DNA of 64,000 nt, taken from NCBI RefSeq assembly GCF_006345805.1, contig NC_043007.1:75640001-75704000 (forward strand). The letters are read 5' to 3'. Made by a program: the position numbers and the translations under genes. Under the pieces are notes generated by a model. It was not told the origin of the DNA. It did no database searches and saw only the letters and a program-made list of their open reading frames with translations. Below are positions 1,395 through 58,240 of this stretch, in pieces. The DNA is from Octopus sinensis. Taxonomy: Eukaryota. Position 1 is the first letter of the stretch. The number at the start of each line of letters is the position of its first letter.

Positions 1395-1586
1395 TCATTT
1401 CTGATCAATCATTTGTGGATAACCAGCATTTGGAGGGTAAGCAGCATTTGGAGGATAAGCAGCATTTGGAGGATAAGCAGCATTTGGAGGATAAGCAACA
1501 TTTGGAGGATAATGAGCAGTCACTGGTGGGTTTACAAATGCAGTTGGCTGGTTTGGCTGCTTTTGTTGAATGACAATCCCAGTGGT
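1395..1586 (-). CDS. Copy A coding exon 5 (cytoplasmic tail with 18-bp/hexapeptide repeats)
   Basis: ttttacAG|acc...aaaTGA; 63 codons plus stop, with five YPPNxx units. Candidate AATAAA at 1204-1199 on the minus strand. Confidence 0.85.
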   Translation of the reverse strand, partial: TTGIVIQQKQPNQPTAFVNPPVTAHYPPNVAYPPNAAYPPNAAYPPNAAYPPNAGYPQMIDQK

Positions 1587-4500
1587 CTGTAAAAGGGCAG
1601 AAGAAAAAGTAAGGAATTTAAAATTCTTTAGAAGTAAAAGAGAATTTTGATATAAATGTAATGGATAAATTTTTACTGGCGGATTTAAAAAGACATTACT
1701 TAATTTTTCTGTTTTAAAAATTTCAGCATTATATTTAACATAATTATATATATATATATATATATATATATAAAGTTAATCCAAATAAGAAAACAAAAAG
1801 ACAACAACGCAAGGATGTGGAACAAATAAAGTATTATTGGACGCTCAGGAAAGAAGGGAAGAAGGAGGGTTTGACGTTTCGAGCGGAGCTCTTCGTCGGA
1901 AACATAGGAGAAAGAAAGATCCCGAGACGGGAGGACAGAGGAAAAAAAATCCAGGTGGTATTCACGAGGTCACATACTAAAAGGCGGAAGTGGTAAAAAT
2001 GGAGGAAAATATTTTTAAAAACAAGAGAGCTATATCAAAGAAGGAATGGTAAAAAAGGTGTGCGAGATGACAAGTGTGTGCGTGTGTGTGTGTATGGTGG
2101 ACAATGGCTAGTAGCAGGCAGTAGTAGAATTAAGGAGTGGTGTGGGGGTACCCTAGCAAGTCAGAAAGGCAGGTCAGAAACAGGGAGGTATGTGTGTGTG
2201 CGTGTATATGTATTGTGTGTGTTTTGTTATAGTATGTGTGTGTGTACGTGTGCGTTTTTTGTGTGTATGGCGAGTAACTGTGCTTAACTTAGTGTATGTG
2301 TGCGTGTGTGCTTGTACATGCGTGTGTGTGTATATATACGTATGTGTAATTGTGTGCGTGTATGTATGGTTGTGTGCCGTATGGGATGTATGTGTGGATT
2401 CATTTGTGTGTGTGTGTGCGTGTGTATGTGTGTATGTGCGTGTATGTGTGCGTTTGTATGTGTGTGTAAGCGTAAATGGATGTATATGCGTGTATCCGTG
2501 GGGTTGTGGGTTTTTTTTGCGCATGTGCGTGCGTATGTGTGCGCTTGTTTTGGTGTGCGTATGTATGTGTGTGTCTGTGCTTATATGTGTGTACGTATGT
2601 GTATGTGTGCGTGCGCGTGGAGGTATATGTTGTGTGTATGTATATGTGTCGGTGTGTATGTGAATTAGTGTGTGTTTGTACGTGTGTATGTGTGTGTGCG
2701 TGTATTGTATATATATGTAAATGTGTGTGTGTACGTGCGTGAGAGTGAATGTGTGTATGTATGTGCGTGTGTGTGGAAGTGAATGTGTGTATGTATGTGC
2801 GTGTGTGTACAAATGTAGGGGTTTATATGTTTGTTTATATGTTTATATGTGTGTATATATATGCATGCAAGGACACACATCGCAACTGAAAGATTGATGG
2901 AAAAGACTCTTGCGGTGCGGGCGCATGCGAATCTACAGGCACACACGCACACGCTCCGACATACGTCCGAAATAAAACCAGACCCCACAGGCATGCGTGC
3001 ATGCATGTATGTATGTGTGCGTGCGCGCATATATATATATGTATATATATATATATATAAAATAGAAGAAATATACACATATAAAAGAAGGAAAATGCAC
3101 ACAGTTTACATAGTTTTAATATATTTTAAATGAAAGAGTATTGTGGTTGTCAACCAGTTTCGCTTTCGCTAATCATATTGTAATTATGTATTTTCTTAAG
3201 AAGATTTTAGTTCATGTTCTTGTATTAAAGTTTGTGAATGAATCAACAAGTAGAAAATCTAAGGGGTGGTAATTGCTCATTTTTTTTGGGGGGGTGGGGG
3301 TCGATAAACATACAAAAACTCATAAGCTAAGGTAGTGAAATGAAATATGTACAATGATGGATATGTGATCATGAATTAGAATATATACTGAAACCAAAGT
3401 TAGTTATGTGTTCATATTTAGGCGTGTTCTGTATTATTTGATAAATAAATTTTCTTTATTTAAATGTTTTTGTACAGAAATTGTTTCTTTGCACTGGTAG
3501 ATAGGGGAAACTGAAATTTGGTTGGAGATCCCCTGCACATCTCTCTATGCGTTCAGTCAAAGTTACCTGTCAACACCTTCGGAAACAGATCTGTGGATCT
3601 TTACCTTTTGACCTACAGATTTAAAAAATAATTTTTTCTAACTAAGCACTTTCAAACTTCGCACATTGGTAGAATGTGTCATATAAAACATATTTTACTC
3701 TTAGCATTTTTGAGAAAAACTTATATTTACGAAGCTATTTCACCTTAAAGTTGTCGTATTTCGGTAATTTCAACCAATCAATGACGTGTATTCAGCTGAA
3801 TAAAATTACTGCTGTTGTTTGTCAACAAAAACTTCCAGCGGTGTATTTTTCGTTTGTCACTGTTATTTATGACAACCCTAACCCTAAAACCTTAAAACCA
3901 GTACCAACGCACAAACGATGTCATAAATAACAGTGACAAACGAAAAATACACCGCCGATAGTTGTTGTTGACAAACAACAGCAGCAATTTTATTCAGCAG
4001 AATACACGTCATTAATTGGTTGAAATTACCGAAATACGATAACTTTGAGGGGAAATAGCTTCGTGAATATAAGATTTTCTCTTAAATGCTAAGAGTAAAG
4101 CATATGTTATATGACACATTCTACCAGTGTCCGAAGTTTGAAAGTTTTTAGTTACAAAAAAATTATTTTTTAAATCTGTAGGTCAAAAGGTAAAGATCCG
4201 ATCCGTTCCTTATGTAGTGTGGTTCTCTGTCTAAGTGACATACTTGTCTGTCCTATATAATGGTGTCCACAACCTGAACAAGTTATAACATATATTAAAT
4301 TCTCGGATGCACAAATGAATTGTAAACCTCTCTCCTTGTCTGAATTGGAATTCCGAGCATTCGAGTAGGTTGGGGCATGTTCCACAGTTTGGACGTTCAG
4401 GTTTTTTAACAATTGGTTTCGTGGTTGATGAATTTATGTGTTTTCGGATGTTGTTTATTTTGGATCCCTAGTGAGCATTGGTAGATTTTGTACTATAGTG

Positions 4501-57956: not shown

Positions 57957-58064
57957 GAAAAATTTAGGTGTATTTCCATATATTTTTGATAGTTGTCATA
58001 AAAACCGATATTAGTTATGTAACCATCCTTATTAGGATAGAGAAATGTAAAAATCAGTACTTAC

Positions 58065-58240
58065 CCATAGACTTACAATACATTCTGCAGTAGAGTAACA
58101 TTAGACAAATGTCCAAAGGATCGGTACTGTAATATTTTTGTTGAAAATCCCACCATTGAAATAATGAAACACAAAATTCCAATACCCAAATGAAACGCTC
58201 CCGTTATGGTCATAGCCATGTACTGGAAACCAGCAATCAT
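58065..58240 (-). CDS. Copy B coding exon 1 (1-nt deletion near 58095)
   Basis: MIAGFQYMAMTITGAFHLGIGILCFIISMVGFS is 29/33 identical to copy A. Donor GTAAGT at 58064; upstream acceptor at 58267-58265 with 24 nt of UTR, as in copy A. Confidence 0.85.

Follow-up and report, generated by a model that had tools for sequence, protein, structure and literature searches.

Two paralogous genes, referred to here as A and B, lie on the minus strand of a 64,000-nucleotide stretch of octopus DNA (positions 75,640,001 to 75,704,000 of contig NC_043007.1; hereafter the window). In this work, we describe the exon structure of both genes, trace their relatives in cephalopods and other molluscs, and present the evidence that places them in a divergent branch of the CD20-like superfamily of four-helix membrane proteins. 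Gene A is intact and, judged from its sequence, probably a working gene; the copy of gene B in the window carries a frameshift.

The window is AT-rich (~37% GC) and filled with repeats. Exons were located by searching for minus-strand stop-free stretches containing CCC, and then by a six-frame peptide self-comparison of the two halves of the window. The former search found the string ...SSSICCCCS... in two minus-strand stop-free segments, at ~5.8 kb and ~50.9 kb, and the latter returned five minus-strand segment pairs (E 1e-9 to 1e-22) amid many repeat-derived matches. Assembly of the exons by hand with AG/GT boundaries yielded, for both genes, models identical to the base with those of the initial annotation, which had described two minus-strand paralogs ~31 kb apart with short exons (72-192 nt) buried in repeats. 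That description was reproduced: the distance from the ATG of A to the stop codon of B is 31.2 kb, and the coding exons of both genes are 72-192 nt long. The four hydrophobic helices, the CCCC cluster and the Pro/Tyr-rich tail that had been noted are likewise all present. All introns are in phase 0. Gene A has an intact open reading frame (ORF) for a product of 216 amino acids (aa) and coding exons of 177/72/90/120/192 nt, and gene B, under the initial model with its weak exon-1 donor, has exons of 159/72/90/123/141 nt and a product of 194 aa; the two proteins are 56% identical. No third copy or exon fragment beyond these ten exons was found within the window by tblastn with 27 family proteins.

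An in-frame TAA lies 5' of the ATG of gene A. An acceptor AG is conserved 24 nt 5' of the ATG in both genes, the exon of A beginning at 18533, which implies a further, non-coding exon ahead of the first coding one. The YPPNAA repeats in the tail of A correspond to an 18-nt tandem repeat (5.3 copies, 1417-1512). A collection of 15 billion proteins, transcript assemblies included, contains none with 90% or greater identity to A, and gene A thus lacks an annotation in the two genomes nearest to the window. Coordinates of the ten coding exons are listed in Table 1.

Table 1. Coding exons of genes A and B in the window, with the protein segments they are predicted to encode (TM, transmembrane helix)
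Feature	Position	Strand	Remarks
Gene A coding exon 1	18333..18509	-	ATG at 18509; TM1, extracellular loop 1 with NLS sequon, first half of TM2; ends ...SLW, followed by GTAAGT
Gene A exon 2	13750..13821	-	72 nt; second half of TM2 and basic cytoplasmic loop KKNSEAQTKRM; size common to all octopus paralogs
Gene A exon 3	7626..7715	-	90 nt; TM3 with KVAYMTFAILSASIF motif
Gene A exon 4	5721..5840	-	120 nt; extracellular loop 2, TM4, juxtamembrane motif EFVLSIVSSSICCCCS
Gene A exon 5	1395..1586	-	disordered cytoplasmic tail with (YPPNAA)n repeats; stop codon
Gene B coding exon 1	58065..58240	-	taken to the conserved GTAAGT donor; ATG at 58240; initial model ends at 58082
Gene B exon 2	55275..55346	-	72 nt
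Gene B exon 3	52334..52423	-	90 nt
Gene B exon 4	50901..51023	-	123 nt; carries EFVLAIVSSSICCCCS
Gene B exon 5	49748..49888	-	tail and stop codon

Exon 1 of all orthologs and paralogs ends in TGG directly followed by GTAAGT (...SLW), 18 nt beyond the donor of the initial B model. This conserved donor is present in the window's B at 58063-58064, out of frame: the frame opened by the ATG meets a TAA at 58073-58075, ahead of the donor. The in-frame TAA results from a 1-nt deletion between 58096 and 58095, which is accompanied by two adjacent substitutions relative to both O. vulgaris copies and O. sinensis; the deletion is absent from these three orthologous copies. The donor used in the initial model (AAT followed by GTATTG, after 58082) is weak, without a G at +5, and serves as donor in none of the homologs, and the resulting protein does not contain the family-invariant 'xxxSLW' start of TM2. 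Thus the identical five-exon, phase-0 architecture claimed for both genes stands for A, and for B it needs a weak donor that goes unused in the relatives; unnoticed in the initial annotation, B is a frameshifted copy of a young duplicate. From its sequence, the B of the window is probably a null (frameshifted) allele, a decaying duplicate or the product of a sequencing or assembly error.

Over the B region, identity to O. vulgaris OX597824.1 and O. sinensis CM016869.1 is 98.5-99.4%, by which the window belongs to the O. vulgaris species complex and to neither of these assemblies. Both species have two B copies ~30-33 kb apart on the same strand. A ~30-kb segment has thus been duplicated in the O. 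vulgaris/O. sinensis lineage, and by this comparison the window's B is the downstream, younger copy (B2); the upstream copy (B1) should lie just past position 64000. The B1 protein is identical in O. vulgaris and O. sinensis, with one synonymous difference between the genes. Twenty-two codons vary among the three B2 sequences, in every case by an amino acid change or an indel; most of them belong to the tail or to one of the two extracellular loops. Each sequence carries its own lesion: the deletion at codon 49 in the window, a 1-nt deletion in a T-run of exon 4 at codon 116 in O. sinensis (RefSeq reads through it, giving the 156-aa isoform X3), and E198* in O. vulgaris. O. bimaculoides has a single B, 31.7 kb upstream of its A ortholog on the same strand; given this conserved order, the B-A arrangement is therefore ancestral.

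The unit of duplication covers ~34650-64000 of the window and corresponds to 6498-33129 and 34729-59017 of the O. vulgaris locus (L001); it is apparently single in O. bimaculoides. As all introns are in phase 0, chimeric gene models are easily built. The O. vulgaris gene model P0002 (L001 10001-49018) is chimeric and spans B1 and B2. At CM016869.1:75714701-75743054 of O. sinensis, a second product, of 200 aa, starts from the ATG of B2 and extends more than 10 kb past its stop codon, toward the expected position of gene A; no B-like exons are present between that stop codon and the end of the product, which may be a read-through or chimeric model.

The search with A, which covered 5.8 billion proteins, yielded 25 homologs. 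All those with a species name are cephalopod proteins (O. bimaculoides, O. vulgaris, O. sinensis, Argonauta and Acanthosepion), and short transcript-like contigs make up the rest; the closest is O. bimaculoides LOC106868672 (76%). Nine annotated octopus genes share the five-exon structure (177-210, 72, 90, 120-123 and a variable number of nt), an agreement far beyond chance. Seven copies in mixed orientation occupy 549 kb of O. sinensis CM016869.1, and four copies 275 kb of O. bimaculoides CM046611.1; octopus genomes have some 7-8 copies within ~0.55 Mb. The O. sinensis ortholog of A is expected between LOC115217350 and B2. In a rough neighbour-joining (NJ) tree, drawn without support values, all octopod copies group apart from transcripts that are probably decapodiform, a grouping which suggests separate radiations. 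Together with the mollusc relatives described below, the sequences indicate a mollusc-wide family with a cephalopod and apparently an octopod radiation. The tandem array proposed in the initial annotation is therefore present as an expansion, though a modest one of about 7-8 copies in 0.55 Mb of O. sinensis. The family is not restricted to cephalopods.

Proteins of this family are ~175-260 aa long and have four passes. In the cephalopod alignment, invariant motifs fall in each TM helix: TITG..H...G (TITGxxHxxxG) in TM1, where His replaces the Gln of the MS4A motif 'G..QI..G'; VG..GI..G in TM2; K(I)AYMV.AILSA in TM3; and E(F).LAIVSSSICCCCS in TM4, which with its juxtamembrane residues reads E(F)xLAIVSSSICCCCS. 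The loops and tails are the variable parts. Further traits of the branch are very short extracellular loops, a low-complexity Pro/Tyr/Gln tail and, in cephalopod members, virtually no N-terminal cytoplasmic segment. One O. vulgaris protein (P0006, 268 aa) contains the block IIAVGILGI...CCCCSGTR twice and looks like a fusion of neighbouring LOC115216970/LOC115217485-type paralogs.

Zuccolo et al. 2010 (PMC2826416) argued that invertebrates have no true MS4A genes. Nothing relevant was found in the literature on MS4A in octopus or molluscs, or on the octopus LOC identifiers. The connection of the cephalopod proteins to this superfamily was obtained through intermediates. A cephalopod profile searched with HMMER against 1.84 billion representatives gave 167 matches at E<=1e-3, the remote ones at E 1e-20 to 1e-4. 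Named matches outside the cephalopods are from scallops, unionid and mytilid mussels, a limpet, a whelk, Lymnaea, the brachiopod Lingula and Ciona; the last is the RefSeq 'membrane-spanning 4-domains subfamily A member 8' ('MS4A8'), matched at E 1.2e-9. The Pfam CD20 family PF04103, with a gathering score of 27.9 bits, was detected in 40 of 66 remote matches (best E 1.4e-16) and in nine of the ten closest, six of which score above the gathering threshold. When a profile of the remote set was searched against the PDB, it found FcεRIβ at 2.6e-13 and CD20 at 1.2e-8. Profile-profile alignment with hhalign joined the cephalopod alignment to the remote set with a probability of 99.9% (E 7.9e-36, 165 columns), and to the single Ciona MS4A8-like protein with 98.1% (E 1.1e-13) over all four TMs; in the latter alignment, EFVLSIVHSAVCC..CC of Ciona is paired with the cephalopod EFVLAIVSSSICCCC. 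When 134 remote sequences were reversed as a control, none scored above 5.7 bits, whereas the originals score 37-90 bits; TM composition does not explain the link to CD20.

Gene structure provided a second line of evidence. The coding sequence of a PF04103-positive scallop gene (L010) is likewise split into five phase-0 exons, whose boundaries fall at homologous positions, namely after ...LW, before ...K and after CCCCSxxx. On the profile intermediates and these intron positions, A and B are assigned to a divergent branch of the CD20-like superfamily, an assignment that does not amount to orthology with the vertebrate MS4A cluster. The CD20/MS4A-like identity first suggested for them is accordingly upheld at the superfamily level, via intermediates (PF04103 in 40/66 and the FcεRIβ and CD20 structures), and not by the direct Pfam test.

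The predicted structure of A was examined next to these results. An AlphaFold2 (AF2) model has a predicted local distance difference test (pLDDT) score of 75 overall and above 90 in the TM core, with helices at residues 3-33, 44-70, 77-116 and 122-148, extracellular loops of ~10 aa (EC1) and ~5 aa (EC2), and a tail that is disordered (pLDDT below 50) from residue 154. The loop between TM2 and TM3 is basic (KKNSEAQTKRMK) and N-x-S/T sequons occur in the TM1-TM2 loop; both fit an N-in/C-in topology, and four TM helices with cytoplasmic N- and C-termini are predicted, the four-cysteine block following directly after TM4. In a Foldseek search with the model, FcεRIβ chains ranked 1, 3, 5 and 13, sarcospan 2 and CD20 23, with CD81, synaptogyrin and designed bundles interleaved; the best E was 0.023 and the TM-scores were 0.39-0.56.

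Rates of change were compared between regions, with the synonymous rate (dS) as neutral proxy. Between A and its O. bimaculoides ortholog, dS is 0.103, the nonsynonymous rate (dN) 0.121 and the overall ratio of the two (ω) 1.18; ω is 0.4-0.5 in the TM segments and 1.55 in EC loop 1, and EC loop 2 has 10 nonsynonymous and 0 synonymous changes. The ratio of the proportions of nonsynonymous (N) and synonymous (S) differences (pN/pS), pooled by region over four ortholog pairs, is 0.58 for TM1, 1.11 for EC1, 0.87 for TM2-loop-TM3, 2.95 for EC2 (34 N : 3 S), 0.60 for TM4 and 1.03 for the tail. Between the O. sinensis paralogs LOC115216970 and LOC115217485 there are 24 N and 1 S differences, 13 of the N in EC1, and their first introns are 97.3% identical, a pattern which suggests recent duplication or gene conversion together with loop diversification. 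These region-level values, based on small counts, suggest TM segments under moderate constraint and outward loops that are changing fast, probably adaptively, and they support the view that the nonsynonymous excess of the extracellular loops is receptor-like. Vertebrate and ascidian MS4A genes are likewise reported to have fast extracellular regions (bioRxiv 10.1101/2022.08.15.492342). As a separate observation, LOC115216970 and LOC115217485 lie 0.53 Mb apart; the peptides of their exons 3 and 5 are identical, and that of exon 4 differs at two residues only.

As a whole, these observations are probably best explained by an octopus cluster that belongs to a mollusc-wide, undescribed CD20-like branch, with A intact and B frameshifted, whose products act as subunits of larger membrane assemblies. 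Under this explanation, A and B would resemble CD20, FcεRIβ and other MS4A proteins in being palmitoylated tetraspan subunits, with multiple S-acylation of the CCCC block at the cytoplasmic end of TM4. They would reside in ordered membrane domains and act by association with other membrane receptors or with each other, in oligomeric or partner-bound form. Their fast-evolving, putatively glycosylated extracellular loops would touch a variable exterior, be it ligands, partner ectodomains or pathogens, and the tail may recruit cytoplasmic partners of the WW/SH3 type. A receptor or co-receptor role is plausible.

Several results weigh against this explanation. Pfam scans of A and B gave no PF04103 match even at E<=10, and the family matched only two of 24 cephalopod members (best E 0.067), none reaching the gathering score; the PF04103 check proposed in the initial annotation hence left A, B and 22 of the 24 cephalopod relatives unmatched. 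Searched against the PDB, the cephalopod profile retrieved PscE alone (E 0.33) and no MS4A chain. No Foldseek match reaches an E of 0.001, and the four-helix bundle is a generic fold; with the other folds interleaved, the fold evidence is therefore only consistent with CD20-like membership. Neither A nor B contains a canonical PPxY, their tails consisting of YPPNAA and SPNVADPY repeats. The values of 0.6-0.9 for pN/pS in TM segments are high, so that relaxed constraint, and not adaptive change, could account for some of the loop signal. The absence of any protein with 90% or more identity to A hints weakly that its expression is low or restricted. Finally, palmitoylation, partner binding and surface localisation are proposed from motifs only. 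Other matches were set aside: Pho86 in the direct Pfam scan of A and B (E 3.9, chance), the low-complexity tail of A to RON2 in a phmmer search of the PDB, and scattered sub-threshold Pfam matches of single members (DUF6463, Tetraspanin, CD20, MARVEL), which were judged to be noise.

Alternative explanations were considered in turn. The proteins could be trafficking adaptors whose Pro/Tyr tail recruits Nedd4-type WW ubiquitin ligases and which direct the endocytosis or lysosomal sorting of partners, like NDFIP and LAPTM. Many of the mollusc relatives, as well as several paralogs from octopus and decapodiforms, do have a PPxY within ~10 residues of the C-terminus, the tail is disordered, and the CCCC block may suggest raft or endosomal targeting. 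However, the absence of a canonical PPxY from A and B and the near-neutral tail (pN/pS ~1.0) speak against this role, which also leaves the fast extracellular loops unexplained, and we regard it as unlikely.

Lower still is the probability we attach to A and B being stand-alone, ligand-binding chemosensory receptors like the MS4A proteins of necklace neurons, active in the suckers or the olfactory organ. Membership of the CD20-like superfamily, the clustered lineage-specific copies, and the nonsynonymous excess in the extracellular loops, as reported for vertebrate and ascidian MS4A (bioRxiv 10.1101/2022.08.15.492342), all speak for such receptors. However, the family is small (~8 copies), and the tiny extracellular loops of the A model offer little ligand-binding surface. 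Most characterised MS4A proteins are, moreover, co-receptor or scaffold subunits and not chemoreceptors.

Equally improbable is the view that A and B are relics, decaying or without function, of a cluster with fast turnover, in which the high dN/dS reflects lost constraint. The different B2 lesion in each of three assemblies, the overall ω of A and the lack of annotation of A in the two closest genomes are in keeping with decay. Nevertheless, the ORF and splice sites of A are intact after a divergence of dS ~0.10, and substitution is not uniform: pN/pS in the TM segments is 0.4-0.6 in three ortholog pairs, the loops hold nearly all nonsynonymous and almost no synonymous change, and the TM motifs are invariant across cephalopods.

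Least probable by far, and largely refuted already, is a different or convergent tetraspan family (claudin/PMP22, tetraspanin or MARVEL) with the CD20 link as a TM-composition artefact, for which the UniRef name 'Claudin' on O. bimaculoides LOC106868669, sub-threshold Pfam matches and the CD81 and synaptogyrin Foldseek matches could be cited, but such an artefact is ruled out by the reversed-sequence control and the intron positions are common with the PF04103-positive scallop gene. Each candidate family was also examined and rejected separately. No claudin family (PF00822, PF13903) is among the matches listed (25 of the 36 families for the members), and an EC1 of ~10-25 aa is too short for a claudin and has no W-GLW-C-C motif, so the UniRef label is not borne out. 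Tetraspanin (PF00335) matched three of 24 members below threshold (best E 0.0017), with no CCG and an EC2 of ~5-15 aa, too short for that of a tetraspanin; MARVEL/synaptogyrin (PF01284) matched one of 24 (E 0.071), synaptogyrin being eighth in the Foldseek ranking (E 0.19).

Returning to the subunit explanation, a more far-reaching form of it would hold that MS4A-type tetraspans predate chordates, as the mollusc CCCC clade might suggest, and that the octopod radiation, its EC loops under diversifying selection, represents unrecognised subunits of chemosensory or immune surface recognition in parallel with the vertebrate and ascidian MS4A repertoires. We consider this broader claim doubtful.

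The remaining features of the window are repeats and mobile elements. Within gene A, intron 1 contains a 2.7-kb (ATG)n microsatellite at 14375-17117 (914 copies, 98% matches), which gives this region a strong GC skew; intron 2 contains an interstitial telomere-like (AACCCT)n tract of ~150 bp at 12981-13131 (TTAGGG on the other strand); and intron 3 contains a reverse-transcriptase fragment at 7051-7443 on the minus strand (RVT_1, 5e-9). Between A and B, a non-long-terminal-repeat (non-LTR) retrotransposon that may be young and near-intact occupies 24777-28633 on the plus strand, with ORFs of 508 aa and 723 aa. The second, longer ORF has matches to RVT_1 (4e-28) and zf-RVT, and positions 30398-30919 contain a related C-terminal fragment. 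A fragment of a Tc1/mariner transposase N-terminus is found at 45183-45764 on the minus strand (HTH_Tnp_Tc3_2, 1.4e-19), and its O. vulgaris counterpart is annotated as a gene (L001 52990-53571). Three copies of a ~400-bp repeat resembling a short interspersed nuclear element, ~91% identical, are located at 8412-8948, 35195-35700 and 53878-54291; these gave the strongest matches in the peptide self-comparison and could mislead exon hunting. A 66-bp tandem repeat at 58825-59137 (4.7 copies, 77% matches), ~600 bp upstream of the ATG of B, yields a spurious 149-aa ORF.

At present, this is an ordinary, if neatly hidden, gene-family finding, in which the divergent member is new and the CD20-like superfamily itself is known. 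The MS4A family was later extended to ascidians (bioRxiv 10.1101/2022.08.15.492342), and the profile and intron-position evidence given here, with which the fold is consistent, points to a recognisable CD20-like lineage across molluscs. The cephalopod branch has diverged so far that the Pfam model no longer reaches it, and its genes are therefore 'uncharacterized', mislabelled 'Claudin' or missed. The CCCC/TM4 signature offers a simple handle for finding the clade, and, with its excess of nonsynonymous change focused on the loops, the family could reasonably be included in screens of expression in the sensory and immune tissues of octopus.

Compared with FcεRIβ (MS4A2) and CD20 (MS4A1), the octopus proteins have the same four TM helices with, as predicted, both termini cytoplasmic; the small-residue TM1 and TM2 motifs and the Glu-containing TM4 align. 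FcεRIβ ranks first among the Foldseek matches of the A model, all of which have E above 0.001 and include other folds. As in vertebrate MS4A, the genes form tandem clusters and the extracellular loops are the variable part. Unlike FcεRIβ and CD20, the octopus proteins give no direct match to the family's hidden Markov model (HMM), their N-terminal cytoplasmic domain comprises only ~7 residues, and a CCCC juxtamembrane block is present. The EC2 of CD20 is a disulfide-bonded loop of roughly 40 aa, in contrast to ~5-15 aa in octopus. No immunoreceptor tyrosine-based activation motif (ITAM) is found in the octopus proteins.

Ciona has 29 clustered MS4A genes with expression in palp sensory cells and positively selected extracellular sites (bioRxiv 10.1101/2022.08.15.492342). 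Its 'MS4A8' has EFVLSIVxSxxCC...CC at TM4, in common with the octopus family, and in both lineages clustered duplication is lineage-specific and the extracellular regions are fast; the octopus family is smaller and has no N-terminal segment. The uncharacterised mollusc CCCC proteins (scallop LOC132548162/LOC117341013; Mytilus, Patella, Lymnaea, Babylonia) have the same TM4-CCCC motif, the same five phase-0 exons at homologous positions in the scallop gene compared, and a Pro-rich tail, often with a terminal PPxY, like their cephalopod relatives. They differ in keeping an N-terminal cytoplasmic segment of 20-60 aa and in having Gln in TM1 where cephalopods have His, and most of them pass the PF04103 threshold, which the cephalopod proteins do not. 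The cephalopod chemotactile receptors, which are nicotinic-receptor-like, are another coleoid lineage-specific tandem expansion of membrane proteins and provide a functional analogy only: they are pentameric ligand-gated channels, their expansion is much larger, and ligand gating and sucker expression have been demonstrated for them.

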